A stretch of 64,000 bases of DNA from Klebsormidium nitens (GCA_000708835.1 DF237428.1:7755-71754); one strand, 5' to 3'. Positions 615 through 63,471 are shown, counted from the stretch's first letter. Program-made: numbers and translations. The notes: generated by a model from the sequence alone, not told the origin.

Positions 615-3600
615 TCATAGATCGTTGTAGTAGTACTGTGGAGGTCGTCGACGCTTTGCGGGCGGTGTCGTCTTCATGTATTGGTCCATTCGAGCCAGTA
701 GCTTGACACAGACGTACACAACAATGATGGCTATCAAAAGATAGAGCGCCCACAACGATGCGCGTACCAGCAGCTTCGCGTTGTCCTCCGAAAAGAGATT
801 CTGCAACTAGGTGAGAAACATTACGGTCAGTACAGCGCGGTAAGGAACACTGCTTCAATACACTCTGGGAATTGAAATAGCCCAGAAGGTTCAGGCTTCC
901 AGGGGGTCATCAGGTTTCCAAAGCAAGCAACGACTCCGAACTTCGACATAGACGATGCACAACGAGAAATTCAAAAGGTTTCTACGCTTTTGCTTGCTCC
1001 AGGCCCGTAGTATACACATCAGCTTTCTACCGCCCAACTCGATCTACTGTCGCAGAGCAGCCTTCCTGAGGTCAAAGCTTAAATCTAGCCAACGATATTG
1101 AACCGGTCACTCACCCGCTGTTCCTGCGCTTCATCCCGCCTCCGCCCCCTTTTCCGACCTCGCGGGCGCTCCTCTACCGCATTTCTCGGGGACTGCTCCT
1201 CTCGAGGCTCGTCGTTCACTTTCTTAGCCGCCGCTGCGTCCGCCGCTTTCTTCTGCTCCGCAAGTTTTCTGCATTCTTTGTCGCACGAGAGGAGCTCGAG
1301 CGTCTGGTTTCCGGACTTTGCCTGGGCTGCTCGGACGTCCGTACAGGGCCAATCCTTCTTTTGCCGGCGGCAAGGACACCGAACGTTTGTCTGCAATTGG
1401 AAAAGAGTGACCTTTTCTTCGGCGCGAATGTTTCTTTGGTGGATTCTGAAAGATTTGCACTCTCAAATCCACCTCTCCTCAAGCGCAGTCATTCATGAAG
1501 GCGGTCAATAGGGTTTTGAGAAAGTAGGGGGCTTTGATTGCAACGTTGTCCGGCAGATCCTAGGGAGAGTTTGTAGGGGTAGCGACCAGGAATACGACCT
1601 TTCGAAATCAACAAGAAACTTAAGAAGCGACACTACTAATGTTCGACCGAGACCCCCTGAACCAACCGGTTCCAACACCCCCGTAAGCTCGTAACAAATC
1701 TGAAAAACCTCCCGAAAACCCCAGATCCGAGTTTAACCGATTCTTACCTTCTTGCGGCACTGCTCCGGGTGTGGACACGCCCCCGCGTGACACACCTCCT
1801 GACACGTGTGCGCGCACAGCGGCAGCTTGCGGTCGCACTTGTTCCCGCACGAGAGCAGCTTCTCCCACTCCCCGGTTCCCCCCCTTTCCGCAGCCGCCAA
1901 CTCTCGACACTCAATGGCTAAAGCAACCCCCGCCTCGCAATGACATTTTCGACGGATGAGTTTCGTACAGGGGGGGCAGGGGCCCGGGTGGCATCCCCGG
2001 GGGCAGGCGTGAATGCAGGGGGGGGTGGGCGGCTTGGAACATTTGCGCGCGCACTGCTCGCAAGGTTCCGGGGGGGGCATGTCGAGGGTATTCGCAGCAG
2101 CGGCCAGCCCCCCGTTTGGAGTGGTCGCGTCCTCTTCCGTTTCGTGGGGCAAAGCGCCATTGCCTTTGCCCCCCGGCCGCGAATCAAGGGAGTGCTCCTG
2201 CGAAGCCGACTCAGCACCGCCCGCATCAGCGACGTCACCTCCGCCGTTCTGAACGGACGCTGACGTCATCACAACGTGGCACACCTTCTCGCACGTGTGG
2301 TTCCCGCACGCGAGCGCAGTCCCGCAGGGTTCGCCGCAAGAGAACGGCGCCGCGGCGCTGCAGGCGACCAGCTTGTGTGAATGCGCCCCGAGGCAGGGGA
2401 TGGACACCGGCTCCTGGCAAGGTGGGCAGGGGGATCCCTCCGGGGACTTCTCTTGCTCGAGGACTTTCTTTTGCTTCTTGGTGTGGCGGAGGGCGTAGAC
2501 TGGGCCAGGCGGAGGGTGCGGCCCGTGGCACCTGCAAAACGTGACGGGTATGTGCTCTGTAAACTTATGTTCACCAGAGAGCGCTTCCAAAAAGAAGATC
2601 CAAAAGCTCTCAACAGAGAAGGGGTTGAAGAAATGGTTTGTCTTTACGGTAGCAAGACGTGATGCAAAGAGCGGTCCGTCCAAACCCTCTCCGCACGCGT
2701 CCCTTGCGGCCATATTATGGAACGTCAAAATAAAGCTTTGAAGACCAAATGATCGTCTCTGCAAAGAAATGAAGTAATGCTTCAATCCAAGGGATTGATT
2801 GGGCGATAAGTATCAACCATATTCACTTCACAATCGGACGCTTCAAACCACCCGGTCTGACGATACCACCGCTTGGAGCTACCTAGTCTACGGAAACGGA
2901 CGCCGTAATCCGATCGCGGAAAGTGATTGAACACCTCGGGTTTGAGTTCTAAACGTTATCATTTGGGTTGCAAAAGCGCCGTCCAGCTATCCCGTCGCTT
3001 ACCTCTTTGGGCACGCGTGTCCGCAGCCCAGGTCTTCCTGGCAGACCATGTTGCACGGCGGACAATTGCCGTAGTGGCACCGGTGAAGCGGCACTTCGGC
3101 GGAGTGACGGCAGCGGCGGGGAATGGGGCACGGTTTGCTGCACCGGGGGGGCTTCACTTGGCTCTCCGTTCCGCAGGGGACCTAGGGACAACAGACCGGG
3201 GTTTGAGGCGGGGCGGGCCTTCAACACCGAAAGTTGAGCAGACAGGAGCAGAGAAGTGAGTTTGTAAGATTGCATGACATTGAACTGACAGAAAGCAAGT
3301 TGGGAAAAAGCGAGGCGACGGAAGCGACGATAAGGCCACCGTTTGCCTCACTTGGCCCTCCGTTCCGCAGGGGACCATGGACAACAGACGGGAGGTTAGG
3401 TGGAGCGGGGTTTCAACTACACTCAACACAAACCAGGTCGGAAAATAGTGACGAAGCGACGAGGCAAGAACGAAGCAACGATGCGGCGCGCTTTCACGTA
3501 CCGGGAAGGCTATACCTTTGCCTCGATTCTGCACCGCAACTAGAAATCCTAGCCCCGGGTTGGACTAGAAGAACCAGCTATAAGGATACCCAAAGACGGG

Positions 3601-6600
3601 CAGCGGCGCAATCCGGGTCTGATGAGCAGAAGGACGGTATTGCGAGAAAATGCGGGGAAGGACAAACGGAAGTATGGGACGGTGATAAGGACAGACGGAA
3701 GGCCTCGGCAGCTCAAGAGTATGTTTGCAGCTGTGAAGCCACCCGACCAAGGTGCCATACACCGAGAACTCGCTGAGTTGAAAAAATTGACCACCAATGG
3801 CTAGAAATGCAAAGTGAAAGGCATTAGAAGTTTTTGGACGAATTGGAAAGTTGAGCGACTTGAGCGAGTTGCAGAGCCTTCCCTTTATTTTCAGACACGG
3901 CGCATTTTGGTGTATATTTTTCAAATCGTTCTGACTTACGCCGTATTTTAACACTTTATGGCTTTGAAGGGCGTCCATTTAGAAAAGACTTACATTACAT
4001 CTTTTTGAAGCACTCACCGTGATCGTAGTCTCCCCACACGATACGCCATTCGCACGGTGACCGGGCACGGCGCGCAAGACCCCTCATGGCACGGCGCGGG
4101 GCACTTGTGGTTACCGCACCGCAGGCAGCTCAATCCAGCCTCTACGGTTTCATGATTCCAGGGTTACTTTCAGGACAAGAACGAAAGAAGTGGACTTTCA
4201 ACCCGAAGTTCTCACCGTGATTGTTGTTCCCCCGCATGCGCACGCAATCGGCACGGTCACCGGGCATGGCGCGCACGGTCCCTCGTGGCACGGTGCGGGG
4301 CACTTGTGGTTGCCACACCGCAGGCGGCGGCCGCACGCCTCGGGGCAGGGCGGGCAGTCCCCGTCGCAACAGCGCCGCTTGCAGGCATGACGCCCGCATG
4401 CCCGCTGACGTTGACACCGGCGCTCGCACTGGAGCTCTTGGAAGCAGGGTACCTTGAGCAAGGAGGAAAAGGAAGACCTTCTGATGTATGACCTCAATGG
4501 TGTAAACCTAAAGGAAAGTAGCGGCATTCGCAATCTGCTGCTTGACTAAACAAATGAGAGTCTGCTCGAGAATCCACGAAGTTCAGGATCTCGTCCTTGT
4601 CCATGCCGGCGAGAAACTGCTTCCTAGCAGATGCAAAACGGTCATGGGGTTTGGGGCCTGCTGCAATCAAGGCAAAACTCTGAACGTCCCAAATCTGGAG
4701 GAGTTCTGCGCACCTGTTTCCGGAGGCTGCCGCAGCGGCAGGCCTTGTCGGTCATGACGCGGCACGTCTCGACACAAGGGCCCACGTGGCAGCGCTCAGG
4801 GCACGCGTGGCGGCCGCATGCGAGGAGCTTCTCACACGTGGCACCGCACGTGGGAGTCGGGACGTCGCACGGGAGCTCTCCTAGCTCAGTCTTGCCGCAC
4901 GGGCATACGCGCACGCCTGGCAAAGAAATAACAATAGGTTTCAGATTTAAGTCTTGAACTTGGGGCCCTATGGAAAGTTCTTGGCGCTGAAATTTTAAGA
5001 ACTGGAAGGGTGGGGTAGAAGAGGTTGAGGAACGCAGGTTGCATGGCCGTAACGCTGAAGGCGACTAAAGAACGACGTCCTAGGATACTCACGCTGAAGC
5101 AGAAGTTACCCGCGATGATCTGGCTCCCAAGATCGATTTAGGGCGAGACGTGTTGCTGTCTCGGTCGGAGACAGCAACACGAAGCGCAACCCTCGGTTGC
5201 GCTTGATCAAGTAACCGAAGGACTGGCTCACTCCAGGGCGAAGGACTAGATTGAGACTACGGCAGAGTTTCATTCGACAAAGGTTGAACGATGAATTAGA
5301 AGCAGAACTGATTCTGCGGGCAATCCCCGCAGTGTCCCATGACAGAAACGTTCCCGTTCGCCGTTCTTTCATTCATAAAGTACACAGCTAAAGATTCAGC
5401 AGAAGACGTGACGCGTCCACAACCAATATACTTGGGCAAAAGAGCAACCGAAACTCCATATAACCAATTTACTTGGGCAAAAGAGCAACCGAAACTCCAT
5501 ACCTGAAAGTGGACAGTCTCCGCACTTCCCGCCATGGCAGAGCCGCTCGCAGGCGTGCCTCCCACACGCAAGCCGCCGACCACACTTCTTCCCGCAGGAG
5601 AAGTCGCGCTGCGCGCAGGTCCGTGTTTCTGCCGCTTTTCTGCAGCGGCACGGAAAGACGCCGGCCTCCGGGCACGGGGGACATTCACCCGGGTGGCAGG
5701 GCTGGGGAACATCGGAGGTGTGAATTAGCAAGGTCTGGCACGGGTGGGTTGCAGGGGGGATGATTATCTTCGAGGATCCTGCTGAAATTCAAACCCCATT
5801 GATTATTTCAACCGGGTGCGCAAACCATCAAAGGGCGTCGGACTTTCCCCCATCATAAAAGATGCGGAGTCGTCGAATCTTCCAACGGGACAGTTCTGGC
5901 CTCCACGAGGACCAAAGGTTCCGAAAACAAACGTTGTCTCAGAAGCGGACCAAGCAGATCCACCTGATTTCGTAGAGTTCCCACGCCCTTCGCATTCTTA
6001 CTCTCCTCTTCTCAATTGGAAAGGAGTCCCTTACAAAATCAGGCGGCCTTCCCAAATCCCAAACAGGAATATCTGAACCTCTCCTCATTAACCATCTTTG
6101 ATCCTCAAGTCCTCCCCAAGAGCTCAAGCCCGCAACCTTTATGCACATCCTCTATCAACTATCAAGCCTAAAAACCCTTGCCGACTTTGAAAGCCCCCAA
6201 AAGCCCCTAGAATGCCGATGCCCGCACCTGCTTGCACGAGTGCTTCCCACACGCCAGCTTTCGCCCGCACATCCCTCCGCACGCCCACTCCTGCCGGCCG
6301 CACCGCCGCACGTCCTCTCCCGCCCCGCAGAAACAGCGAGCCGTCACTAGTTGCGGGCACGGGGGGCAGGGGCCGGGATGGCAGAGCAAACGGCACGTGT
6401 GACCGCAATCTGACTCCAGGGGCCGACCGCAGGTTTCACCGCATGTGTGCGGGGGAAGCCACGGGTTGAAGGAGGGGTTGTGTTCCTTGCCGCAGAAGCA
6501 GCGGTATGCGGAGGGGATGTGAGAGGAGGGGTAGTCGTGACGGCACTGCAGGAACAGAGCGGGGGTTCTTCAGTGAAAGTGATGATCGATGCTGTTGGTG

Positions 6601-8115
6601 GGGGTTACTTCTTGTTTAGTCTGCTGATTCGCATCTTGGGCGAGACACAAAACGTGATGACACGAGTAATATTCAGGCCGAACAGGACCGCACATCATCA
6701 AAAAAACCATCTGAGGTGAACAAGATGGTGACCACAATTCTTTGATTCTGCGAAAAGTCACAAACACTCTCTCTCATAAGCCTCGCGCATCTGTCATAAC
6801 TCTGCCGATGGCACCGATCGATCACTTATTTCAGACTGTCTCGCTTGCTATAAACACGGACGTCAGGTTGGCCAACCACTCATTCATCCAACCAGCTTCT
6901 CTATCAGCATCCGACAATTTCGCGCACTGACCTTGGGGCAGTGCCAGTTGGCATCCGCCTTTGGCTTTGGCACCACTGCAGGGGCGTTGGAAGGCAAGGG
7001 GTCGGAGGCGGTGTTCCGCAGGCCCACTGCAGCAATAGACTGGCGGGCCCATGACTGGATGCATAGGAGATGCATGATGGCATAGCAGCTGTCTTGGCAG
7101 TCCCATATGGGGTCCGTCGCTCGGATCTGCGGGTGTAGGAGAGCCACTTGTCAGAACCTAGGCAATAGGAAATGGTCCATTATAGCAAGTTGGTCTTGTC
7201 AACTTGCTATAATGACTTATTGACATAATAAACAGCTGCGCAAAGGAGACGGTAGACAAACGAAAGGTGTTTGATTGTTAAAACCCCCCAAGTTTTTAGA
7301 AGGTGGTGAGGGCCAATATCTGAACGGAAGGACAAGCTCGAGGACCTCATGGAGTCTTGACGATCATAGTGCTCAACTGCTGAAGTTTTTCAATGATTAT
7401 GTCTCATATAACTGTAAGTAAAGCAGCAGCGCCCTAATAATTGAACGCACAAAGCAGGAAGGTCGCAAACAACTCTGAACGTTCTGGAATTTCAGGGTAT
7501 GAAGGGGGTTTGTGGGGCTTTGTTCTGGCCTTGTTTAGCATTGCTTTTTGCAGTGCCCCTTGCTGAGCCAATCAGTTTCTTTGCCTTTCATAGTTTAGAT
7601 TGTCTCTTCATCTCTCGAAAACATGAACACCGAATTCTTGAAAATCCTAATGAAACCAAAAGAATACGGCATGGCCGTATGATCGAAATACGATCACCCA
7701 CCTTCTCCAAACAGATTAGACATCGAGCGGCGCCACTCTGCGCGCTGATCAAATGGTCCCGGATCTTCTCGATCCCAGCGTCCCCATCCGCCCCTTTCCC
7801 CAGCTCATAATCGCCAAAGATCGATGCCTCGAGCCTGCTGATATCAGGTCTCTCCTCATTGTTGTCCTCCTCATCACTGCTGCTGATGTCACCAAAGCGG
7901 CTGTTGATGTTATTCGTCTGAAAGGACGTTGGGGGCTTAGGAGAAAGCTTTGCCTCTGCCGGGCTGCTGGCGGAGGTCTGAGAAGACGCCAAATTTTGCT
8001 TCGTCGATTGGGCGGGCTTCCGGCCCCAGGGGTTGACACTCGCTGGCGCGAAGGTGCGCGCCTCGGCTCCCTGGTTGGAGGAGCTCCCGGCTCCGTGCCC
8101 TCCCGAAGGCTCCAT
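615..8115 (-). CDS. NFXL1: NF-X1-type zinc-finger protein, NFXL1/plant NFXL2-like, with C-terminal transmembrane helix; 10 exons, about 998 aa
   Basis: Hand-spliced exons (minus): 8115-7702, 7126-6932, 6545-6228, 5701-5503, 4916-4714, 4452-4216, 3181-3003, 2531-1748, 1390-1115, 806-615. All are GT-AG and phases close (2997 nt). N-terminal RING/PHD-like segment CLICLEK|[26 protein letters not shown]...WHCPK|C, many NF-X1 repeats (CG.H.C...CH.GPC.PC), a coiled coil, and a hydrophobic tail ([26 protein letters not shown]). Confidence 0.92.
3325..4124 (-). repeat. Intronic partial duplicates of NFXL1 exon 6 (3' end, 4124-4018) and exon 7 (5' end, about 3395-3335)
   Basis: Direct sequence match to 4324-4216, including a GTGAG donor, and to 3200-3140, with the acceptor TAG changed to ATG. 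Confidence 0.9.
5421..5501. repeat. 41-bp tandem duplication of the first bases of NFXL1 intron 4
   Basis: aaccaat(a/t)tacttgggcaaaagagcaaccgaaactccata occurs twice (5421-5460, 5462-5501) with one mismatch. Confidence 0.95.
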
Positions 8116-9375
8116 GGTTTGACGCCCCCTTCCTCTCTTCAGCCAGTGCCAGCCAGGCAAAAGCTTCAAAGCTTGAGCTGCTTGAGCTGCAGGAACTTGA
8201 CGAAGCAGCCAATGCTGACAACTAGGTATGTGCCAGTCTGAGAGAGTCTGCGCTCAGTGAGTGATAACGGTAAGGATGATGGATGGCGACAACGGTCTTG
8301 CGCGTTCCGCGCGTTCTGTTGAGCCAGCACCTGCAGCACTAGTTCGCTCCCGGAGTCCACTTTTGCTGCGATGCTGTGATGCGCGCGCGGTGATAATCAC
8401 ATCATCACCGATTAGGAGCGCGAGCTCGATGATTTGTGCGCGCGTTTCCGAGGGCTTCTGGACTATTAGAAGCCCGTTTCCTCGACTCAGCTTGTAAATA
8501 GGGAATAGGTAGATCCTTGTCGACTTGCGAGGTGTCGAGTGGGTGCAGCCTCAAATATAAATACTCAATAGTGAACACGCTCCTTCGTCTACTCAGATTA
8601 GCTATCGGTAGCATCCTACACTGAGCTAGAAGAGTATGCTTGACCAAGTGGGCTGCGCTGAAATAAAAAACTCTTTTTTTAAACATCCGATTTTCCTTTT
8701 TCAAGAAAACAGCGCTCCTAATTCTTTTGTTTTTCCTTTTGAGGCCAAATGGCATGATGCATTGCCGCCTTTGAGGTATATGACGCACAAGAAGGTCGAC
8801 ATCTTTGATCAGGATGATTACTGGCCACTAAGAAAGCAATCTTCATGCAACGAACAGGATGCCGAAGTTTGTCTTAGGCGCAGGTTAGAGACCCTGAATT
8901 CCAGTCGTCTAGGTTCTAATCAGAGGCCGAACTGATGGGAACAACTCATGTCGAGCTGCCTCGCCCCAGGGGCTGGCGAGGAATGCTGGGCTGTATCGAT
9001 CTGTAGTGCCGTTTCAGGCGCCATGAGTGGCCCAGAAGACTCTTATGATTAAGCACCACCAGTCAGGTTACAGCAAGGAGACTTGCAAATGATTTCAAAA
9101 CTTGGTAGAAAAGGCTGCAAGCGGTCTTGAAGCTCACCAGACAACGTGGAGAAACGAGCCCTGTTGTCTACGGTTCAGGTCCTATACACGTTTACAGCTC
9201 CCCATTGAGCTCCGTCCTTTCAGGCACACTGGTTGACATTCATTTGTACGAACTTTTAGCGCAGGCTTTTGATCTGCGTCAGGGGGGCCAGCAGGACTCG
9301 CGATGCAGACTTAGGTCTACAAAGGTAAACAAGGTAAACAAATTAACAAGGTAAACAGTCACAGCAGTCATAGCC

Positions 9376-12300
9376 ATGGCGGCACCGTCACTGTTCCTGC
9401 GCCACGTGTTCGGCCTCAAGGGCTCCATACGCGACAACATCCACTTCATCGAGGACGTGACGGTGGTCTACCCGGCCGGGCGCAACGTCGTTGTCTACAA
9501 CATTGAGCAAAAGACGCAGCGCTTCATTTCCGGGTCCCCTGAGAGCGATGGCATCTCCGCAATCGCAGTTAGTGCTAACCGCAAGCTAATCGCGGTTGCG
9601 GAGAAGCCGCTCGGGGCACGCGGGGGCACGGCAGCTCGAAGCACTCCCGATGGGGGCCATCAGCTGGATAAGACTGCGACCGAGAAGAGCATCGGGTTTG
9701 CGGAGAGCTCAAAGGGAGGGATGACGTCAGCGGGGAGCTTTGTGGATGGAGCAAAGGGGGCGGTAATTACACTGTACGACTCGACGACATTGAAGAAGAG
9801 GAAGGTGAGCGGGCAAGTCAGGCGTATAGGGGCAGCATTGCAATGAAGTACCTGTGGGGAGAGATGTGGGGCTGATATAGAAGTGTGAATGAAATGGAGA
9901 AATCGAGTGGGGTCATGTTGCTGACAAGAATTGGTGCTCGGTGCTTTCTTCTGCTCTAGAAGTGGCCAAATAAGCTTTCCCAGAGAGCTTCGTTGTGCTA
10001 AGCTTGGTAATGTGATACCAGTCACTCTAAAACTAACATCTGGTCGACATTCAAAAGATGAAAGAGGAAGGGCGATGCGGATCTACACGTTTCATGGTTG
10101 AATAATTGCAAAATGCGTTTGCGCTGGCAGTGTCATTGCCTCTGTTAGCTGCATGCACTGTCCAAAGCTGTGCAAACAGATATTGGTTCACTAGAAGCTC
10201 GGAATGAAGACGTCCTTGTCTCCAAATTATCACCACTCAGGTTTGTTTAAACGCCTTTGCTTGAGATGCCCTTTGTAAAAGGCATTCCTCGGCTCGACTA
10301 GACTATACACACTTGAGTAACACATTTGGTCCGAATATATGCTTTTCCTCTGCCAATGTTTGAAGAGATTATGCCAAGTCGATGCAGTCTTAAGTTAAGC
10401 CTGAAGTAATCAAACAACCCTTCTCTTTGCACTTCCAATTTTCTACAGACGCCCCACCAATCCAGTACACGAGCGTCACCTTCACTTCAAATTCTTCTCC
10501 TCTCGATGGTTTCTTACAGATGTGATTCATCCTGACAATACGCGTGCTTACTTTGTCCCCCAGCCATCTTAAACTGAAGACGAACCATGCTCATCGCAGA
10601 CGCTTTCTCTTCCCGACATCCTTTCCGTCGAGCAAACCACATCGCTTGCAGTCCGATGGAGAACTCATCGCAGGATTATGAAATGTTTCTTCCGTGGTCT
10701 CTGAGGAGCGTGCTTCAAGCAAGAGGGGATATCGTTCTTTCTACGAATCGAACGCATCATTCTCATTGCAGTCTCTTCCCGACATCCCTTCCGTCGAGTA
10801 CACTGCCATCGCCTTCAGTTCCGATGGGAAGCTCATCACTCAGAATGGAAGCTTCCCGCGGTGGGACCTAACATGCTTGCTTCAGGCGAACAGGAAATCG
10901 TCCTTTCTTGCGGAATAGAATCTAAACCAAAAAAACCATTCTCCCTGCAGACGTTGTCCCTTCCCGACATCCCTTCCGTCGAGTACACCAGCATCGCTTT
11001 CAGTTCCGATGGGAAGCTGATCGCGGCCCAGGGGGCGTGCCCCGNNNNNNNNNNNNNNNNNNNNNNNNNNNNNNNNNNNNNNNNNNNNNNNNNNNNNNNN
11101 NNNNNNNNNNNNNNNNNNNNNNNNNNNNNNNNNNNNNNNNNNNNNNNNNNNNNNNNNNNNNNNNNNNNNNNNNNNNNNNNNNNNNNNNNNNNNNNNNNNN
11201 NNNNNNNNNNNNNNNNNNNNNNNNNNNNNNNNNNNNNNNNNNNNNNNNNNNNNNNNNNNNNNNNNNNNNNNNNNNNNNNNNNNNNNNNNNNNNNNNNNNN
11301 NNNNNNNNNNNNNNNNNNNNNNNNNNNNNNNNNNNNNNNNNNNNNNNNNNNNNNNNNNNNNNNNNNNNNNNNNNNNNNNNNNNNNNNNNNNNNNNNNNNN
11401 NNNNNNNNNNNNNNNNNNNNNNNNNNNNNNNNNNNNNNNNNNNNNNNNNNNNNNNNNNNNNNNNNNNNNNNNNNNNNNNNNNNNNNNNNNNNNNNNNNNN
11501 NNNNNNNNNNNNNNNNNNNNNNNNNNNNNNNNNNNNNNNNNNNNNNNNNNNNNNNNNNNNNNNGGAAGCTGATCGCGGCCCAGGGGGCGTGCCCCGACTG
11601 CTGCCTCACGCTGTGGAGCTACGAGAAGGGCAAGTGCGTGGGGCAGGTCAAGAGCAGTGTCAGCTCAGCGGCCCAGGTCAACCAGGTAAGGTTTTGACAC
11701 TCAGTTCTTGTCGTACCTGCTTCGAAACAATACCAACTTTAAGTTCGAGGAGCCGGTCAAGAGCACGTCAGCTCCACGGCTCACGTCAAACACGTTGGTA
11801 TCAGCGCTTCTCGTGACACTCTCTGCCAGACTCCTGCGTGTTTGCCCGGCACGATGAAGGTGAGCCCACAAAGAGACTGCTTCGGTTCACAGTTCACCTT
11901 GATTTCGCACAGCTTTGCTCATCAACCAGCTCGCTCATTAACCAGCTCCTCATGTCATACAGACCAATCAGTGTGGTTTGTCCACCCCGTTTTCCGATAA
12001 TACAGGTCCATCGGCGTCCTAGATCCCGTATGACAGAATCTCAGAATGTTTACTGTTTTCAGTGGGCAACTTTCTTCGATTTGCCACACCCCAGTTTATA
12101 TCTCAGCTATACCCCCCAAGATTGCTTTCTGCCTGCCACTCGTCTCCCTTCTAAAAGCAACCGGGGACCGCTATTTCTGCGGCAATATCGTTCTTCCCAT
12201 TGACACTGCATTCGGGCAATCAAACACGCGACCATCCGCATAAACAAAACGTTCTGACTGCATAATATGTCCACTTCAGATTGTTTTCTGCCCCTCCGAC

Positions 12301-15300
12301 CCTTCCGTTCTGGGCGCGGTCGGGAATGGCTTCCTGCCTCTCTACCGGGTAACAGGATTCGAATACCAAACATCTGGGTCACTAGACACCCCACTTTCCC
12401 ACAAACTGTATATTCTGTCCACCTCAGATCGCTTTCTGCCCGTCGGACCCCTCCCTTCTGAGCGCGGTCGGGAACGGCTTCCTACGGCTCTACCGGGTGA
12501 CAAAACCTTTCTCATCAACTGAACTTTTGAACCGTCAACCACAACATTTTCTAGTATACCAAGATTGTCAGACTGCATGCTTCTTCGTCCACCTCAGATT
12601 GCTTTTTGCCCCGCGGACCCTTCCCTCCTGAGCGCGGTCGGGGACGGCTTCCTGCGGCTCTACCGGGCCACAGAGGCAGCTTTGAAGCAGCTCCCGACCA
12701 GCCTTGGGAGACGAGAGCCGCAGCCGTACCCGTGCCACGCGTGGCTGGTGGACCTAGCGGAAAAGGCGGAGAAGGACCGCTGCGTGGTCGCGAGCGCGAG
12801 CGGGGAGGTGCTGCTCGTCGAAGGGGGGGAGGTGAGCATCGCATCTTCGCACTTTTGCAGACTCTCATCAGTTTTGGCTTCGGTTCTCCAGTCTTCGTAA
12901 GATTTGGCAGTGGGAAAATAGCATATAAAGAGGAGGACCGCTGCGTGGTGGCGAGCGCGAGCGGATAGGTGTTGCCCGTCGAGGGGGGAGGTAAAGGGTT
13001 GCTTTTATCTGTTGGGGGGAAAGGAGGGGGGTGGTGATTAGAAAAGGGATTTTGATCGCAAATCGGATGTCGTTGTTCAGTCGCACTCGTGCGCCGGCTG
13101 AACCGCTGAAACGCTCAGCCTCAACTTACGCTGATGTCACCCCGAGTCAGAATCTTGGAGTTGTCGCAAGAGCTGCGTGCTATTCGCTTTACACGTTCAA
13201 CCGCCAAGTTTCGACATTCTCAAATGAAGATTTCATATTTTTGTACCCCAGGTAAAAAGCGTGATTGCGCACGTGGGTTCCGAAGAAGGCGGCGGATTCT
13301 TCTCCGTGGCGGCGCATTCGAAGGGGTTCGTCTGCGGCGGGGAGGGGGGAACGCTGTCCATGTTCGAGAAAGAAGACAAGGACGTCTATAAGGTAAGCCA
13401 AAAGCCAAACCCCAAAGCCACAGCGAGTCAATGAATAACCATCCCAACACTGCTAATTTTTAGATGAAGGCCGCTTATAAATACTGTGCCACATCCTTTC
13501 TTCAACGCCCTGCCGCGCAGACCTTCTGGCAATTTGGATATAGATCAAGCCTTTTTTCCAAGGTGGCCATCGTGGCTGAGAGTGGGGCAGGAACAGCTCA
13601 GTCGTTTCGGATCCCGCGTGCTTGCTACAATAGACCATCTGTCATCCATAGTCTCACTCCTAAAGACACGAAAGACACGTGTTGGCCTGGCTCTGTGGAA
13701 CCATGCTTTTCACTTTACGAGCTCGGAATGAAATCCTCATTGTCATCTCAGCTTCTAACCCTCTGTTTTGCCGCCGACAAATTTTGCCTTCTCTTCCACA
13801 GCGCGTTCGGACGGTCCGCATCGAGAGCAACGCGTCCGCGGTCCGCAGCCTGGCGCTGAGCCCCAACGAGGAGACGCTGGTGTGCGCGCTGGAGAACAAC
13901 CAGATCTTCGTGCTCGCGCTCACTTCCACGGAGATGCTCAAGACGGAGGACATGAAGATCGACCTACTTTCGCAGGTGGGAGTGAAGGGTTTCATCGCTC
14001 TGTTAATGGTTCTTCATGCACTGAATCCTCTGACTTTTCTGTGATCTTTTGCGCTCGCCGGAGCATAGACAATCTTTTGTCCTCCCGCTCACGTCCGTGG
14101 AAATGCTCAAGACGGAGGACATGAAGATCGACCTCCTCTCGCAGGTGGGCGGAATCACAGTTTAGGTTTTCGAAGATTCATGATTTCTATCTGAAGAGTG
14201 TTGAAGGTTACTCAGTTGAGGATTTTGCTTCTGCCGCGGGCTCTCGTGCGGGAGTCAGGGATCCGTTGGCGGATCCGTGGATACCGTGAGATACCAACGC
14301 GTATGCGGAGGATTGCCGCCAAAGCTTTTTTCGCAGTTTCGGGCACAGTTTCTGAACGAAAGGTAAGCATTATATTCTGATCAGACGCAGCGCTTCCCTT
14401 CCAAGAGGCAGGTTCGATCATTTCCCACCCAACGAAACGCCTTTCCAAGACCCTTTATTCAAACCTATAAGACTATTTGATGGAGGGCCCCAAAGCCTGT
14501 CCCCTCAAATCTCTGTCTCCAATTCCTCCCACAGTCGTTCCACTCGGAGGGCATCACCGGGCTGGACGTGTGCGCGCGCAAGCCGCTCGCGGTCACGTGC
14601 AGCACGGACAAGAGCGTCCGCGTGTGGAACTACCTGGACCGGACGTCCGACATCGTCAAGTTCTTCCCGGAGCAGGCGCTCTCCGTCGCCATCCACCCCG
14701 CGGGTGAGCGCCAAACATTTCAAGGGCTGGAGGCGTCAGGTGTCTCGTTTTTGAAGGCTACCCAAATCTGCAAATTCGGAGGATTTGAAGGACTTTTTGA
14801 AGCAAGCGCTCTCCGTCGTCATCCACGATGCGAGTGAGGGCACGACGGACGTCCGAGTCGTTTGCGTTGCAGTTCTTAAAGATTTTTTACGACTTCGGAA
14901 CCTTGAAATCTCAGACTGGACTTGAAGAGGAGTCTGCCAACAAGACACAAAGTGGTTCAACTGTGGAGGAAGGTCCATGATGCGTCCACGAAAGTGCCTC
15001 CAGATTGCCTCGGTTCCGTAAAGGGCGTCTTCTGGCCCCCGACTCTCGTGTCTAAGAAGGGGTTTCGGGAGCGACCGCCTCAGCTTCTAGCGCGGCCTAA
15101 AGGTCTAAGAACCTCCGTAGCAATCTGACCTGTCAACTCAGGAATCCAGGGACCCGGGTCTGGTCACTTCCAAGACTACTTCTTTTAGACTCCCTGTCAT
15201 GACATATTGCTTCAATGGCGCTTGGAGCTTTCTGGAGTCTCTCAGTTCTCAATGTCAGACTCTCGCGTGCCGGGCACCCTGCAATCTACAGTTCTTTCCT

Positions 15301-30400: not shown

Positions 30401-32236
30401 TCCAATGAGATGTTCAAGGTTCTGCAAAGAGAGCAACGGCATAATATTAGTTTGACGAAGCTCAAACCGTCTCTTGGTGAATTACGACGTTCAATATGCC
30501 CGAGTGAGATCGGAGTTCTTAGCGAAGCTAGGAAGTCTTGTATCCCTGTCCTGGAACTTGCAGACCAACTCTTAGATTGAAAAGAAACAGCTTCAGGTCA
30601 GTAATCACAAACCTTTGCCAGAAGAGAAGGGTTCTGGACATTGACAGCCTGCCGATTCTGCATCACGATGAACCTGCACGAAGCAGCTGAGTATGTCATT
30701 GCTGCCTCTTGATCTGCGAACCACAAGCTGCTGCCCACGTGTTGGATCTTTGATGCTGCGCCAGAAATGGAGGAAACGGCTTTTTTATTCGGCATCATGT
30801 TCGCTTATGCCTTCACATCCTCTATGTAGAGCTTCTTGCCGGTCAAGGGCTAGGTCAGAGCGTAAAATTCTCAGAGAGACCTGGCTCATGCGCTATGGAG
30901 AATTGCCGAAAATCTTCTCACCTGTCTATAGCAGCGATTGGGACGTTGTGCGCGGACCTTAAGAAGTCGGCTAACTCGTCTTTGCTCATCTTTCTGCATG
31001 TCATAAAAGTCCCCTCTTTAGACAATGGTTTTCTTCCGGGCTCCGGATTCGTCTCGATTATCGTTGACATGCTTGATCGCTAACCATATTGGAAGATGGA
31101 AAGCAGACTTTACTAACCTCTCGGGTTCCTCAGATAGACCTGAGACAGAGTAGGTGCTGGTAGTTCCGTGGAGGGTTCTTTTGATTGCGAGCAAGTCCTG
31201 CCCTTCTGAATCTTTAAAGTTCAGCTTCACCTGCATGAAGGTCGTTTTGAAATGCTAGTCGAATGCTAAAACGTGCATTCGACCATTTGCTCATGTAAAC
31301 GCTAACGAACTTCTGCTGCTTCTGCATTGCAGGACTGGATCTCGGAAAACTTCATCAAGAGTTCCATGTATAGTGGACACCGGAAATAAGAGGTCGCGCA
31401 CGTGAAAAGAAGGCAAACAGCTTCAAACTCTGTAAGAAGTAGGGGATTTCCTTCTTCCTTTTTGCAGTTTCCGTGTCAAAGACCTCTCCAGATCTTCAAT
31501 AACTCGGAAGGAGAATAACCTAGACTCGCAGAGAGCTATACGTCTTACCAATTCTTGTCGAGATTGCGTACTACTTTACCATTCGGTCTCCGTTCAAGTC
31601 TGCAAATGCTTTTCAACTTACAGACCAGCTTACCTCTGCATTTCCTTGATGTCCAGAAGATAATTGGAGAGAATCATTCACCAGAGCCGCAAGATTTTTC
31701 GCTCGCATATTCTTTGTTTGGCCACCAAGAGCGAAGGCAATTGCTTCTCCGATCACGCTTTTTCCGGTGCCGTTCTTCCCAACCTGTTGAAGGCAAGAAT
31801 GGAGTTATCTGAGATAAAATATTCCCGTAAAGAACTTGTGCTGACATTTGGAGGATGATCAAAAGCTTCCTATGAAGTAGCGCGAAACAAAGTAGCAATT
31901 GTATACACATTCTTAGAGATCAATTTCATGAAGCTATATAGAGCAAGGGTTTCTTAGAGTCTACACAACAATCAATTCTTGTGCTACAAACACCAGAGAA
32001 CGTCAGCAGGATTTGACAACTCTCACAATGCAGGTAAAGCTCGAAAGGGGTCCGATCTGTGCTTTGTCCCTGTAAGATTTGAATCCTTGGATGTCGATTG
32101 ATGCCAGTCGAAGCTGATTTGTGTTCGTTGGTTTGCCAGCTTCAGCTTGGTCTTCCTCGCAAGAGTTATTCGTTGAGGAAGCATTCCCCGTCCTCTTTTC
32201 TTTCGCCACAACCAAGCTTTGTGGTGAAGCCCCCAT
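24407..32236 (-). CDS. Divergent SMC-family ATPase of the SMC1/SMC4 group (head, coiled coil, hinge, coiled coil, head); multi-exon with short introns
   Basis: Exon 1 (32236-32027) LASIDIQGFKSYRDKAQIGPLSSFTCI joins exon 2 (31783-31634) VGKNGTGKSVIGEAIAFALGG...MRAKNL (Walker A). Q-loop exon RFIVMQ near 30670. Hinge-like segments FGGSFFGRIQDV...AVNAVL, FITEDRHTASQVLEYFKANRIG and NIVTLSGEIFKK|DGEVSKG at about 28150-27270. C-terminal head: RPDRHKWRNFSTLSGGQQALAALALSFSLQAVFPSPFYFFDEIDGSLD. Last exon (24529-24407) EQNTAQYIVVSHKPEVYELARTLVGVYQDK...*. Internal coiled-coil exons were not all phased by hand. Confidence 0.88.
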
Positions 32237-38500: not shown

Positions 38501-39672
38501 TGCATGGTTGGCAAGAAGCACGTGGGAGTTGCGGGCCTGATTTCAAGTGTGGGACTCGCATATGAGCAGCATCTCGGTGCCTGAAAGATTTCTGGCCGTC
38601 TGGAATGCAGCTGAAGCCAGCTGAAGACACAGGTCTAGACTCTGCCAGTGTGAAACCTCAACAAAGTTTGCATCGCCGCGCGCGGCGGCGCGGGCATTGC
38701 GGATTCCGTCATCGCAACCGCTTGTTTCTTAATCGGACGGTCAATCATGCAGCTTGTGTAACTTGTGTAACAGCGCGCGTCAACTGCCCCCGTATCGTGG
38801 TTGCCTTTGACATAGGCGGTTATTAGTTGGCCGGTGTTGTAGATATTTTGAACACGTACACCTCCGATGATCAGGAGATTGCAGTACCTAGTACTGGCAT
38901 CCGAAGCAGAGGTAAGTATGTAGTACGACAGCATGCATGGCTAGCACGGGTTTAAAATTGATGACATCAGATATAGGCCGCCTGGGCCCAGCCAGGAAAT
39001 TTGCTGATCCGGCATGGCGGCCGCTAGCTGGGGTCAATTAGTATTGCATGATCATGACGTCCTGCATGATGGCTCTAAATGCACGACTAGTTGCAGGTTA
39101 CCCCTCGGTTCAGCTTGAATCATTGTGACTTGCTTACTTGCAGGCTATACAATTAACAATTAAGCTCGATCACTCGATGTTGCCAATCAATGTCGAACAT
39201 CGAGACTCAATTTCTCTGCCAAGACTTGGCGACTAGTCAATTGCATTGCTAGAATTGTAATCATGCATGCAAATCGATCTCAGTACACGCATGTTTTGCA
39301 TACGAATACCTGTACCGCACACCATGGCCGTGGCAAGCTTTCTGCATGCATCGAAGAATCTATTGAACCAGCTAGGGGCCCGCGGCCAACTATACAATCG
39401 GAGCATTGGTTCTCCACGCGTATATACGTCATGCACGTAGCAGTATATTAGAGGTATATTAATAAATAAAGTCGCGGCGTAGGTTGGCTACCACGTCTTC
39501 ATGATCTAGTCAACTCAAACGGGCATGAACTGTCATGTGTACGCAGGGCCCACCCAGGGCCCATTGCCAGGTTGCGTCGGCGTCAACTCTACCGCCCAAA
39601 TGCATGCTTGAGTTGATGTCCAAAATATGCATCAAGTCAGGCCTGAGGCACGGTGACCAACATAAGCACGTG
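38501..39672. promoter_or_regulatory. Cluster of RY-core (CATGCA/TGCATG) and G-box (CACGTG) motifs upstream of the GT47 gene
   Basis: Nine RY-core loci at 38501, 38746, 38932, 39045, 39063, 39262, 39343, 39430 and 39601; G-boxes at 38519 and 39667. Function is inferred only. Confidence 0.3.
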
Positions 39673-40105
39673 TAGCACGGCATGACGATTTTGATATACT
39701 GCGCAAGGCCCGGCCTACCCTATAATGCTCCTGTTGGTGATTTGACGGCCCATGATTCGCAATTTTGGATGAAGAATGATTTGCAGCTCTTTGAATGTTG
39801 TCGTAATACACCGGAGTCGAAAAACAGATTCTACGGAGACCCTCTCAGTAAGTCTCTTTTCTCCATTGGCAAAAAAGAATGGAAAACGAGGCGAGATACC
39901 ATATAGCTGCTGACCGGCCCACTCCCTGTCGATGTTTGTTGCTCAGCACGTTGCTCATGCGAGCTGCATAACTGGCAAAGCCACATGACTTCGGCTTGCG
40001 TTAGCGACACCCGAAATCCTCGCTTGGAACAACTTCGAGACAATGGCAACCAACCTCCAATTGATCCCTTATTCTGGATGTACCACCCTAAGCCTCAGCT
40101 CTCCG

Positions 40106-43100
40106 CTAGCTCAAACTAGCTGCCAACGCCGTCGCCTGCGCTTGAACAACTTTCACCGCCTGTTCCGCCACCGCCCGACTCCGTGCTTCCTCCGCCCACT
40201 TCTTCACTAAAGTCTCCGCCCCGGTCCCCTTAAATGCGCTCTCCAAAACTTTCGCCACCTCCGTAAGCTCCCCATGCGCGAGCAGCGCCTCCGCCCGCGC
40301 CAGGGCTGCGTCTGATGTGGCAGCGTTTGGTTGGCTACCGTTCTGAGGTGCCGGTTCCTTGACCTTGAGTGTGGATGCGGCCCATGCGAGCGCGTGCGCC
40401 AGCATGCCCCCGCCGCCCGGGGGGAGGAGGACCAACTGCTTCGCGCGGCCTTGCAGCGCTTCGAACTGCACGGGGTTGTGAAAGAAGGGTTACAAATCCA
40501 GGCCGGCTCAGCTTGCTTAGGCGAAGGCTGCAGCGAAAACTTGACCTGATTTGAAGGAGACGCTCTGCAATGCCTTACGTCTGGGCCAAGAAGATATTCT
40601 GGTGCATCACAGACCAACTTTACAGATCTGCAATTGGACGACTCGCTTGGTGAAACAGTACACAACTCTCCCGACGCTCAAGTACCATCAAAGTGGTCTC
40701 TTGAGGGCGTGCCCCATCAGGAAGCGTTCGATGCCAAGCGCTTTCTATTACGACGTTGTCTGCATGATACACTTACTAGGTACACATATCCCACACATGC
40801 TGGTGCCGCAAGAGTCCTATAGAACAGTCGAGGGTTCACAGACGGCTCTCGTAAACACCGGCAGGTTCAATATATTATTGAGTAGGCTTTGCGACGGCAG
40901 TCTGCTGAGAATCTCGGCACCGTCAGAATTGACACGAACGGGCATGGAAACGCCCTTGATTTGGATGGTATCCAATTCCTACCCGCTCTTGCAGCTCCGC
41001 TCTCGTGGGCGCCCCTGTCTCCGCAACGACGGCCGGAACCGACGTGAGCGCGGCCATGACGAGGGGATCCCCCTCGTCCACCGCCGCTGCCAGCAGACGG
41101 ACCTCCTCCTTCAGCGGCTGCCCGCTCTCTAGAGCGTCTTCCAATGCGAACGCGCCCTGCAAAGCAAAGAGTCAACAATGTGTTTCTAGAAGCCTCATGC
41201 AAAGGAAAGAGCCAACACATGTGGCTTTGAAAGCGTCAAGTTTGAGCGCTTGCAACATCATCTCAAGTGGGCACACGCATGTGACGTAATGTCAGAAGAC
41301 GACGGAAATTGTTGTCGCCCTGCTCCTCGAACAGGAGTGTATACAGCAAGTCAAGATACTGCGAGAGCGACTTCAGAAACGACACTCGAGGCTGGAAAAC
41401 AAAGCAGTGGGCACTCAAGACCACGCGTTTACTCCAGTCTCTTTTTGTGTCCTTGAGTTAGGCCGAAGCATACGACACGGCCGAAAGTGCGGCTTCAAAA
41501 GCGATACAAGTCGAGGAAGGTAACTAAGCTGAAGGTTATCCTGGCGTCTCGCATATGCTCTCGTCAATTCACAAGCATTCCAACCTGACCAGAACATGCA
41601 CCTCAAAGAAAGATGCGAGCTTCGGTAATCTCGCCTACAATGTGGTCAATGAACGAGTATCTGTGCAAGGGCAAAACTTGCACATTTGAGATCAATAGAC
41701 AGACAGCAGTTGCCAAACGACGTGGGGGCTCACCAAGGCAAGCTTGTGGGCGGTGTGGCTCTTCTGCGCTTCCCGAGATCGGCTGCTGAAAGCGTCCTGG
41801 AGGGCGTTCACCTACAAAACGAGAAGAAGGACGACCAGTCAATCACATAAGGCTTGCTACTCGAAGGGGCTTGAAAGCACCGGCTGAGGCATTTACCTGC
41901 GGATGACACTAGAGGGGCCGTATCAGCCAGCCACTCTTGCTACAGCTCTTTGCGTTCAATCTGCCGCCCTCGAAACCTTGAACTCTCGCGCGAGGCACAA
42001 TCTTGGACTGTACCTTTGGCAGGACCGGCTGATCGACTGGTGTAGATGAGGTACTGAAGGTCGAGAAGTGAGGGGGAAAGTGGCGAGGATGACGCAAGAG
42101 GCTGTGAGAAAAGTAAAGCAACGGCTAAACTGCAGCAAACTCATTGGACTTGAAGATCGGACGCACAAACCCTTCCCAAGTACCATTCCAGACGGCAGAA
42201 ACCTCTTTAGAAAACCGTAGTCAGCCACCCAAAGCATCCTCCTACCTGCATCCGTAGTTCATCCAGCTGCTCTGCCCGTTCCTTCCTCTCGTCCGCAACC
42301 GTCAGCGCGGCTTTCGCGGCCGCAGTGGTCCGCACTTTCTCGATCAGAGCCTCTGTCTCGCGCAGCGCCGCCTGCAGCGCCGCAATGCGCTTCTCCTCCC
42401 CGCGCCGCCACTGGTCGTGCAGCGCCGCACGGTATGCGGCCTTCTTGCGGGTCAGGTCCTGCACATAATGTATACAAACTTTGAGGATATGCGACGTGTT
42501 GGCGTTTTGAGAAAGTTGTGCCTTCCGTAAAACCACCTGCATGGAATGTGCTTCTCCTCCTCGCGCCGCCACTAATCATGCGGCGCCGCACGGAAGGCGG
42601 CCTTCTTGCGGGTCAGATCTCTGCCCACCAGTAATCAGACTTTCACATTGTTGCACTCTCGTTGTCAGGTAGATCCCCTGCGGCATCGCAACGAGCATCT
42701 GTCCCCCGCCGTGCCACTGATCGTGCAGCACAGCACGACATGTGCCCGTCAATCCTAACGAGAAAGACGTTTGTTTAAAAACGTGCGGATTTCTCAGGGT
42801 GTTCAAGTGGTAAGGGCTCTGTCTCGCGCCAGGAGGATAAACATGGAAAGAAGCGGAAACCCGGGCTCACCCTCTCAAGCTTGTGCACGATCTGCGCGTG
42901 CCGGAGCGCCTCCGCCCGCGCGTCCGCCAGCTCCACCCGGTGCTCCTCGTGCAGCTCCGCGATCTCGCGCTGGAACGCCTCCGAGTCGGCCTCCGCCTGC
43001 CCACGCACCGCCTCCTGTACCGCCTGCGACAAAGACCGACGACCACCTTATGTCAGGTTTCCGTAGTCGTTTTTCCATGATTCCGTTTTTTCTACCCGTT

Positions 43101-46100
43101 TCGTAGGTTCCATACTATTCGCGCTGGAACGCCGCCGAGTCGGCCTCTGCCTGCCTGCGCACGCCTCCTGAACCGCCTGCAAAAGAGACTGACGACGACC
43201 TTATGTCCAATTCTGAAGTCGTTTTTAAAAAAATCCATTTTTCTGCCCGTTTCGGAGTTTCCATATCCGCAGTGGAAGGCCTCCGAGTGGGCCTCCGCCT
43301 GCCCGAGCATCGCCTCCTGTACCGCCTGCATTGAGATTTGCATCAGTAAGTGTCATGTCAAATCTCCAAATCCACCAGTCCTTGTTTCCTTTGCTCTAAA
43401 GGTGCCCAGGTGACCAAAATCTTCAAATTTGGAAGTTCTTAATGTTCACTATGGGGTGCAGACTCGGCGTCCGCATAATAACACGTGGCAGCCTACATCG
43501 CCTGCAGAGTTGACGAATGCAAGTTGTTCTCAGTCCGAAAGACTCCACTGCTTGCGGTTCTGGACCGGGTTCGAATCCTTCCTTTATACTCTCGGGGCAG
43601 AGGAGGTGTGATGGATTGGACGATACAACAATGAAGTCCGTAGATTGATCAGGCTCGCTGGCCGCCAGCAGGTCTTGGATGGTGTGCACAGGCAGAGCAG
43701 CACAAGTCAGAGCGCGTTCCAGACTCTGACCAGCAAACGGATTCAAAGCCGTTTTAGTACATACGGGATACTCAAAAGAGTCCGATTTCGAGGTTGCCAT
43801 ACACGAAGCGCTCAGACCAAACGCTTACCTCTGCAATCAGCGCTCCGATTGCTACATCTCCTTTGGCCCCCAAGTACCCGAACTCCCCGCGCTTCAGCCG
43901 ATCTGCCTCCGCCGCCAACGTCTGAACACCCGCCGCTAGTTCCTCGAATCCCTCAAGTTTCGGACTCTTCGCCGCCAGAAGTTCCTGTTGGCTCGGCCTC
44001 CTGAAAGGGCCGGACTCCTCTTCGTCCTCCTCTTCTTGTCGCTTCCTGAGGGCTTCATGCGCCACTTTCTCCGCTTCGCGCTTGGCTGTCTCGGCGCGTT
44101 CGTGGGTCTTGCGGATGTTCTCAAGAATGAGGCTCTCGGGGGCTAGGGACTCGCTCTGGCCGGAGGTCCGTTTCTCGACCTCTTCAACCGCACGCCGGAG
44201 CTGCGGGGCAAAGCTGCATATTTCAGATTGCAGCAACAACAAGAGAATCAACCCCTCCTCGTCACATGAGAGACGGGAGAAGCAATCCGCATTCAGTGCC
44301 GAGAATAAAGCGATCGACTCAGGCCTTACTTAGACCTTTCTTACAGCGCAGTGACCGTGCACGTCGCAACAGCCTTTCTTGAAGGGCTTTGCAGGATCCC
44401 AAGGAGCACGTGCACGTCTACCTCGAGTCAGCAACACTCAGCAGGACCATACTCGAAACATCTGCTACGTTTTCAAGAACGCTTGGTGTAGCTTATGGAA
44501 AAACAGCAGAATTGAGTCTCAATCTGCGCGCAACTGACAGATTACGTCAGTGACGTTAAAGGCCTGAAATCCAAACCGCTTGACTCCCCAAAAGCCTTAC
44601 GTTGTGCACGTGCTGCTTCGCCTTCTTGGAGGCCTCCGTCTCCTCCTCGCCCCCTTCCCGCCTCGCCGCCTCCTGCAACACCTTGTGCAGCTCCGCGTCC
44701 CGCTCACTCTCATCGCTGACATCACTGTCCTCGTCATCACCCTCATCTCCCCCCTCATTGCTGACCTCAGCAGACTTCTTTTTATGCAATTCTTCCTTCC
44801 CGTTGACATCATTTTGCTGCTCCTCCCCCTTGCGGACAATAGCGGTGCCGTCCAGCAACGCCTGCACGGGCGCCTGGGGCCCCTGTGCACCGCCTGCACG
44901 TGCGGGCCCGCTCTCAACCTCACGCAGAGTTTCAGACGCTTCGGACACTGGAGCTTCGGCGCTTTCAGACGCGGCCTCGGACGCCGCCTCTCCCGCAGTG
45001 TCGAGCTTGCCTTCGGACGCGCCTACAGATGCCGCTTGGGACGCCGCAACCGGCTTGCCTACGAATGCTGCCCCTACTAATGGGGCCTTGCCCTCTGCCG
45101 GCTTTTGGTTCCCTGCTTGCTTCTTCTCCTGCTCGGAACCCTCTGCTTTTGCCTCCTTTCCTTCTGATTCCCCAGCAACTTCCGCATCTTTCTGCGCATT
45201 TGCTACCTTCGCCGCACCGCTCAGCTTAGCTGCCAGATCTCCAGTCCCGTTCTTCCCACCAAGGATTCCCGAAGTACTGCTCTTCTGAGGCAACCTCGTT
45301 CCCTCATCCGCCTCTCCCCTGTCCGCCGCCCCTTGTTGACTTCCCTTTCCATTCTGCTCTCCCCCCTGCTTCGGCGACACCGCTGTAGCAACCCCCTTCG
45401 GAGTTGTCTCTGGTCCTAATGGCAAATAGCCCTTCAGATCGTCCCAGTAGTAATATGCACCACCACCGGCACCTAATGCCGCCAACAGCAACAAGATTGT
45501 CCCTGCTCCCTCCCCCCCGCCAGAAGGAGCCGCGCTTGGCCCCCCAGCTCCTGAGACCGCCCCCACCCCCCCTGTCCCGGGGGGCGAATTCAACCCCTTA
45601 GTGGTTGGGCTTCCCTGCGCGCCAAAAATAGGCGCCGCCTGAGCAGCCCCCGTGTCATGAACTGGAACATTTACTTTGCTGATGTCAGCGGCGGGGGTCT
45701 CTACTGTTGGGGAGGGGGCGGGGGTTGCGCTGCTGCCGGCGGTTCCGACGACCACCTTCTGGCCAGCCGCGAGGCCGCCACTTGCCGCGCTCGCATTGGC
45801 GGTTGCGCTGTGCACGTGCGGCTTGGCAGAGGGAGGTCTGGCAGTGTGCTTGTTGGAGTTGTTTTTCAGGTTGGGGAAGGAAGATGTGGTGAATGGCTGC
45901 AAACAGCAGAGCTTGCTAGTTTTTGATGCGGCTGGAGAACAGAGCTTTGCATGCATTTGAGAGCATCTCTGCATCAGTCCACAAACCACAGATTGATTTC
46001 TTGTTTGCAGTGCTTTGATTCTTTCGACGGCCACTACTTGGAGCTCCCAGACAGCGATGGACTGCTGAAACTATACACAAAGTGCTTATCCCATACAACA

Positions 46101-54573: not shown

Positions 54574-63471
<8,898 letters not shown>

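Follow-up and report, generated by a model that had tools for sequence, protein, structure and literature searches.

Tandem exon duplication is said to yield mutually exclusive exons, a finding attributed to Kondrashov and Koonin in 2001 and to Letunic et al. in 2002. In the human F7 gene, a minisatellite made of 37-bp units lies over the exon 7/intron 7 boundary, and each unit carries a pseudo 5' splice site (PMC1557585), while in the Rogers model introns are gained by tandem genomic duplication (PMC3265369, PMC4974935, PMC2891723). Here we analyzed a 64,000-nt stretch of the Klebsormidium nitens genome (GCA_000708835.1, DF237428.1:7755-71754; hereafter the window, with positions counted from its first nucleotide) in which introns of three genes, CFAP57, an NF-X1-type zinc-finger gene and MIC60, contain copies of the edge of the adjacent exon together with its splice junction. 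We refer to these copies as echoes and to the functional exon as the live exon. We favor, with moderate confidence, the view that echoes are non-coding partial duplicates of exon-intron junctions, born locally and repeatedly at the same junctions.

Comparison of the window with itself revealed about two dozen local, same-strand repeats that are offset by 109-351 nt and 70-100% identical, all of them limited to these three genes. CFAP57 is a + strand gene (about 9376-23650) whose full-length homologues match it exon by exon, the close ones carrying the source names CFAP57 or WDR65; the NF-X1-type gene (- strand, about 3000-8200) contains NF-X1 zinc fingers, and MIC60 (- strand, around 40900-43050) was recognized by a Mitofilin/MIC60 match. 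We tabulated 22 junction copies at 16 exon edges, affecting exons 2, 3, 5, 6, 7, 8, 10 and 12 of CFAP57 and two exons of each of the other genes. Each echo core consists of the splice dinucleotide flanked by 40-130 nt from the exon edge and 2-35 nt from the intron; exon edges alone are duplicated, never whole exons, and neither length nor frame is preserved. Copies of the 5' edge lie upstream of the exon with a pyrimidine tract and AG, and copies of the 3' edge lie downstream with GT. This polarity holds in every array and agrees with a first-pass annotation of the same DNA, which had reported tandem exon-edge copies in introns of the three genes at the places where we found them. Its statement that the copies carry their own AG or GT stands for 17 of the 22 tabulated copies, in which the dinucleotide is intact, and the offsets of 169, 179 and 139 nt that it gave were accurate (169, 179/180 and 139 nt). 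Orthologous loci from three relatives, designated L001/L004, L002/L003 and L005, served as outgroups. The echoes of the window are the following.

10583-10671, + strand: CFAP57 exon 2, outer 5'-edge echo; AG intact; two 1-nt deletions
10771-10837, + strand: CFAP57 exon 2, inner 5'-edge echo; 91% identity with the live edge 10956-11022
11741-11795, + strand: CFAP57 exon 2, weak 3'-edge echo; 79% identity with 11632-11687; outside the codon counts
12269-12355, + strand: CFAP57 exon 3, 5'-edge echo c1; AG intact; 1 synonymous and 7 non-synonymous differences
12417-12497, + strand: CFAP57 exon 3, 5'-edge echo c2; AG intact; 6 synonymous and 2 non-synonymous differences; live edge from 12598
12930-12992, + strand: CFAP57 exon 3, 3'-edge echo; GT intact; in-frame TAG; 2-nt deletion
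14050-14149, + strand: CFAP57 exon 5, 3'-edge echo; GT intact; splice-distal half decayed, with indels
14801-14841, + strand: CFAP57 exon 6, 3'-edge echo
15297-15380, + strand: CFAP57 exon 7, outer 5'-edge echo
15450-15516, + strand: CFAP57 exon 7, inner 5'-edge echo; frame-breaking 2-nt deletion; 1 difference at codon positions 1/2 and 7 at position 3
15877-16005, + strand: CFAP57 exon 7, 3'-edge echo, the cleanest; differences at 2/85 sites of positions 1/2 and 13/42 of position 3; 1-nt deletion near the start
16396-16441, + strand: CFAP57 exon 8, young 5'-edge echo of 16507-16553, offset 111
16798-16925, + strand: CFAP57 exon 8, 3'-edge echo 1; four indels
16978-17091, + strand: CFAP57 exon 8, 3'-edge echo 2; two in-frame stops
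18445-18494, + strand: CFAP57 exon 10, 3'-edge echo
19216-19316, + strand: CFAP57 exon 12, 5'-edge echo; 8 synonymous and 1 non-synonymous differences; window-specific states in common with the live exon
4007-4129, - strand: NF-X1-type gene exon A, 3'-edge echo; GT intact; 1-nt deletion in common with an L004 echo; intronic in RNA contigs
3345-3409, - strand: NF-X1-type gene exon B, 5'-edge echo; AG lost; intronic in RNA contigs
43119-43200, - strand: MIC60 exon C, inner 5'-edge echo; 1-nt deletion
43273-43329, - strand: MIC60 exon C, outer 5'-edge echo; 1 synonymous and 3 non-synonymous differences; entire unit, spacer included, homologous to the inner unit
42545-42627, - strand: MIC60 exon D, inner 5'-edge echo; in-frame TAG
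42677-42750, - strand: MIC60 exon D, outer 5'-edge echo; 2 synonymous and 14 non-synonymous differences

As in F7, the tandem copies start at an exon-intron boundary, each has an intronic look-alike of the splice site, and the exon-adjacent site is normally the sole one used (here, in the NF-X1-type gene). In contrast to the 37-bp units of F7, echo units are 110-200 nt long, of which 40-130 nt are exon, are found at either end of introns, at many junctions and in many genes, and are strongly diverged. Furthermore, most echo arrays share the core without the spacer, and units homologous head-to-tail over their whole length are not the rule: spacers were clearly alignable in only 2 of 13 comparisons (MIC60 exon C and CFAP57 exon 2), while z was about 0 in 10. 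The likeness to intron gain by the Rogers model lies in a local duplication that includes splice signals and leaves the mRNA unchanged, because in both systems one copy leaves as spliced intron. Unlike introns gained in this way, echoes lengthen existing introns and create none, as the introns of the relatives have the same flanking exons, and the duplicated piece spans an existing junction instead of an exonic AGGT. With mutually exclusive exons, echoes have in common exon-like sequence with splice sites in the adjoining intron. They differ in being edges only, in lengths that are not kept, in broken frames and in the lack of RNA use in the NF-X1-type gene; where such exons are whole, with both splice sites and with length and frame kept, echo cores hold 14 indels and 4 in-frame stops. 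Literature searches found no paper describing such junction-copy arrays.

The first-pass annotation had claimed that the copies diverge almost only at synonymous sites, on the basis of 36 synonymous and 6 non-synonymous differences in 130 codons of five echoes. We reproduced these counts almost exactly from the same trimmed coordinates (129 codons, 35:6), but the same five echoes gave 42 synonymous and 18 non-synonymous differences (70% synonymous) over their full alignable length. For a complete set, every echo from a nucleotide search was submitted to a fixed local alignment with the exon-derived part of its live partner and read in the live reading frame, which yielded 20 measurable echoes and 1466 nt. 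In this set, synonymous and non-synonymous codon differences numbered 90 and 87, respectively (51% synonymous; 56% in CFAP57 and 29% in MIC60), and codon positions 1, 2 and 3 differed at 9.3%, 9.0% and 25.6% of sites. A null simulation in which the copy is dead from birth and the live exon accepts synonymous changes only gave 37% +/- 3.6% synonymous codon differences, bearing out the earlier expectation that a dead copy should show well under half.

The relatives' own echoes, partly at the same junctions and unseen by the first-pass annotation, provided an independent set of 14 echoes and 741 nt. These differed from their live exons by 33 synonymous and 54 non-synonymous changes (38% synonymous), with 11.4%, 12.4% and 19.6% divergence at positions 1, 2 and 3 and a ratio of position 3 to positions 1/2 of 1.65. 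The relatives' echoes therefore match the dead-copy expectation (38% vs 37%), and they show no transversion deficit at two-fold sites (10:4, vs 15:7 at four-fold sites). Pooling both sets gave a synonymous share of 47%. Divergence almost only at synonymous sites is thus a trait of a few well-kept pieces and not of the system: non-synonymous differences appeared to be nearly absent because the cleanest pieces were chosen and trimmed.

Assignment of the changes to branches with the relatives as outgroups revealed, on the live branch, one change each at positions 1 and 2 but 22 at position 3; the echo branch has 32, 27 and 58 changes at these three positions, and 34 sites are ambiguous. Much of the silent excess therefore reflects drift of the live exon itself. 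The changes private to two L004 echoes in the NF-X1 alignment fall evenly on the codon positions (positions 1-2 vs position 3: 8 vs 5 in one echo and 7 vs 4 in the other). None of the 14 indels in the echo cores is a multiple of 3, and these frame-breaking lesions, together with substitutions at all codon positions on the echo branch, are those of a dead copy. In this respect echoes resemble unprocessed pseudogenes and their parents, in that one branch decays neutrally, the other changes at silent sites only, and frameshifts and stops occur. Unlike such pseudogenes, they are about 100 nt long, lie 100-350 nt from the parent in the same transcript and are anchored at a splice site. Most of the coding-like signal is ordinary, being accounted for by the live exon's silent drift and by the choice and trimming of the cleanest pieces.

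We propose the following course for junction duplication. A copy would be born identical or nearly so, possibly by replication slippage, unequal sister exchange or templated break repair. The copy contiguous with the remaining exon would stay working and the other would become an unused intronic decoy splice site, which would then decay by substitutions at the three codon positions, frameshifting indels and stops. As the live exon keeps drifting at silent sites only, differences between copy and exon look more synonymous than decay of the copy by itself would make them, and selection by eye of the best-preserved stretches adds to this silent look. Later exchange with the live exon may keep cores recognizable longer than spacers. 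Birth in a nearly identical state is supported by the young echo before CFAP57 exon 8 (16396-16441), in which 46 of 46 aligned letters match the live edge, with one single-base indel (98% identity over 47 columns).

Several observations weigh against plain tandem duplication followed by neutral decay. None of 400 simulations reached the 51% synonymous share of the window echoes. On the echo branch, the odds ratio for position 3 was 2.3 (p = 4e-4) after adjustment for base, neighbors and echo. Two-fold sites of the window echoes showed 28 transitions and 2 transversions, compared with 28:29 at four-fold sites, and such a deficit is a coding-type signature. Furthermore, when echoes are compared, those more diverged at positions 1/2 are not more diverged at position 3 (Spearman -0.16), and about five of them differ by 30-42% at position 3 but by 2-7% at positions 1/2. 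Finally, the spacers of 10 of 13 arrays are unalignable (z about 0) despite 81-91% core identity, which is not predicted by duplication and neutral decay.

The silent excess sits in about five echoes, four of which are among the five of the first-pass annotation, and their roughly 10-fold third-position excess is borderline once corrected for multiple tests. Under a liberal null with a ratio of 1.9, Fisher's p was 0.24 for 34 echoes jointly and 0.023 for the window alone; the most extreme echo, 15877-16005, gave p = 0.0026 among 34 tests (about 0.09 after correction), and heterogeneity among echoes gave p = 0.011. A modest excess of coding-type divergence remains in the window. The earlier argument that the excess needs another explanation accordingly keeps some of its force for the window, given 51% vs 37% and the two-fold transversion deficit, but not for the relatives, whose echoes lie on the null.

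Three other sources of this excess were considered and rejected. Base composition (G+C or CpG) predicts a factor of only 1.1 for third-position hypermutability, the position-3 effect survives regression, and positional mutability cannot yield a deficit of transversions at two-fold sites. Echoes that predate the outgroup split could inflate the echo branch, but they could account for a ratio of 2 at most; the echoes of exons 8 and 12 have window-specific states in common with the live exon. A fast turnover of preferred and unpreferred codons in the live exon would require back-mutation estimated at several-fold above what echo decay allows.

The relatives' echoes occur at the same edges and carry the states of their own lineage, and our comparison showed that echoes turn over between relatives. 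The NF-X1 echo 4007-4129 and one L004 echo have a 1-nt deletion and a boundary in common. Together, shared edges, the shared deletion, the young echo and unalignable spacers are compatible with repeated birth at hot junctions, with old arrays in which copy and exon exchange sequence, or with both. The second of these scenarios, which we consider possible but less than likely, is one of concerted evolution: the arrays would predate the lineage split, their cores being overwritten by conversion or unequal exchange with the selected live exon while spacers drift. Echoes at the same junctions with lineage-specific states of their own live exon, the common deletion and boundary, the mosaic of clean and decayed stretches within echoes, and conserved cores between unalignable spacers all speak for it, but recurrent independent births fit the same observations and no conversion tract was demonstrated. 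Moreover, by our own reasoning, codon-blind exchange cannot lift the ratio of position 3 to positions 1/2 above about 2, and selection against copy-to-exon conversion would work in the opposite direction, by favoring non-synonymous differences; gene conversion was rejected on these grounds as the source of the silent bias. The proposal of the first-pass annotation that junctions are recurrently renewed with exchange between copy and exon fits the anatomy; exchange alone cannot create a synonymous excess. Spacers showed no similarity to one another or to the rest of the window, and a mobile element or shared filler within them was rejected for this reason.

Across four lineages (L001-L005 and the window), exons are 80-96% identical, yet introns are unalignable except in echo cores, and in the NF-X1 gene introns cannot be aligned with those of L004 although third positions differ by just 18%. 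Intron turnover is therefore much faster than change at silent sites. L005 is a 147-kb contig of the JGI metagenome 3300060284, collinear with the window locus and with echo arrays of its own, including one echo that is 97% identical to exon 7 and only 74 nt away from it.

The residual silent excess would be best fitted by a reading that we regard as unlikely overall, in which copy and live edge of an echo subset descend from different functional alleles; the first-pass annotation had likewise proposed exchange between diverged alleles or strains. A cross in which pairing was limited to exons could have produced the copy from a diverged haplotype through unequal or half-homologous exchange. 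Alternatively, allelic conversion could later have replaced the live exon while the intronic copy retained the old allele. In either case, the silent-site offset would represent old allelic divergence and subsequent decay would be uniform. Such an origin would explain why five or six echoes are about 3% diverged at positions 1/2 and about 28% at position 3, and why position-3 divergence is flat relative to echo age. The missing two-fold transversions point to coding-type divergence instead of hypermutable third positions, base composition explains no more than a factor of 1.1, and the spacers are unalignable as introns are between lineages. On the other hand, the allelic silent divergence needed, about 0.2-0.25, is as large as that to the other sampled lineages, the young echo was essentially identical at birth, the exon 7 echoes resemble the other relative no more than their live exon does, and changes at position 3 of the echo branch (42 G/C to A/T vs 2 reverse) are as in decay. 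The lack of excess in the relatives' echoes and the corrected p of about 0.09 for the best echo also count against it. This alga is not known to have an established sexual cycle, which we likewise count against this origin. Still less probable, in our estimation, is the further claim that the subset may preserve exon-edge haplotypes about 25% different from the live exon at silent sites, left by recombination between strongly diverged lineages of this alga or its species complex, in which the inability of introns to pair would have restricted exchange to exons.

We observed that in CFAP57 exons 7-8 (15607-16738) the window resembles L005 (88.8% and 91.3%) more than L002 (85.8% and 89.1%), while for all other CFAP57 exons the closer relative is L002 or L003. 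This conflict of ancestry hints at recombination or sorting among lineages, and the mosaic ancestry that it suggests would agree with an allelic origin of some echoes.

It is very improbable that the copies are used, whether as alternative or mutually exclusive exon pieces or through unconventional splicing, and are kept by selection on the protein. Read by eye along the sequence, several echoes have splice-like sites on both sides and possibly in-frame lengths. Examples are the pair of 69-nt copies ahead of exon 3, an 87-nt stretch ahead of exon 2 that may form an exon, and a 125-nt segment following exon 7 that might replace this exon in frame. A subset of echoes also has the silent-site excess described above. 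Against use stand the frame-breaking deletions in the biased echoes 15450-15516, 15877-16005 (at its start) and 4007-4129, the stop codons within arrays and the restriction of the duplication to exon edges. In RNA contigs from two runs, 4216 is spliced to 3181 in the NF-X1 transcript (depth 91-117), leaving out both echoes, including one of the most biased; both are covered only by one low-depth unspliced contig. The exon-contiguous splice site is thus the one used in the NF-X1-type gene, and alternative use of echoes was not seen in these contigs, which may miss rare isoforms. The unconventional splicing suggested earlier found no counterpart in this expressed gene. CFAP57 is nearly absent from public RNA runs. 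A reading as in-frame mini-exons before exons 2 and 3 and after exon 7 was not adopted, since the frame is broken in other biased echoes and the NF-X1 echo is not spliced in.

Two arrangements at CFAP57 are worth recording in their own right. The ends of copies c1 and c2 (12349 and 12497) read CGG followed by GTAACA and CGG followed by GTGACA, respectively, where the live exon reads CGGGCCACA. As both ends are followed by GT, each copy is a 69-nt piece between AG and GT, a multiple of three. The young echo before exon 8 places a second AG exactly 111 nt (37 codons) before the real acceptor (16406-16516). The 111-nt stretch up to exon 8 appears to contain no stop in the phase of exon 7, and use of the upstream AG would insert 37 in-frame residues.

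The window derives from a short-read assembly with at least one spurious gap, in CFAP57 exon 2.

11045-11563, no strand: spurious assembly gap with an exact 33-nt overlap on both sides (11012-11044 = 11564-11596)

In the relatives L001, L002 and L005, exon 2 forms one unbroken stretch over both flanks in which the 33 nt are present once; positions 876-989 of L002 match the left flank and 957-1080 the right flank. The overlap and the three unbroken relatives identify the gap as a contig-overlap artefact. Its length of 519 is fictitious, the assembler wrote 33 nt of exon 2 twice, and removal of the duplicated 33 nt leaves a continuous, in-frame exon of 183 nt. A stacking of diverged haplotypes or strains in tandem by the assembler, which the first-pass annotation had named as a finding that would undo its claim and for which the gap and duplicated overlap might speak, is extremely improbable, as a separately assembled contig from the source reads covers 2950-4600 in the same arrangement with zero differences, independent assemblies of three relatives hold arrays of their own, the copies contain frameshifts, stops and graded decay, and the sequence that follows a copy is not allelic to the spacer.

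Echo arrays are unevenly distributed among neighboring genes, and the window's other genes (20000-42000 and 44000-64000), among them an SMC-like gene at 24407-32236, yielded no local repeats of the echo type. The region of the NF-X1-type gene also contains a 40-41-nt unit in two head-to-tail copies that are 98% identical (5421-5501) and unrelated to exon edges.

Dense arrays of junction copies represent an apparently undescribed way of intron growth and a source of natural decoy splice sites. If the residual silent excess holds genome-wide, it would bear on sex or gene flow in this lineage and on exon-anchored repair. Should the copies prove to descend from former alleles, intronic echoes would document past alleles, and aberrant break repair anchored at exons, in a form that can be dated.

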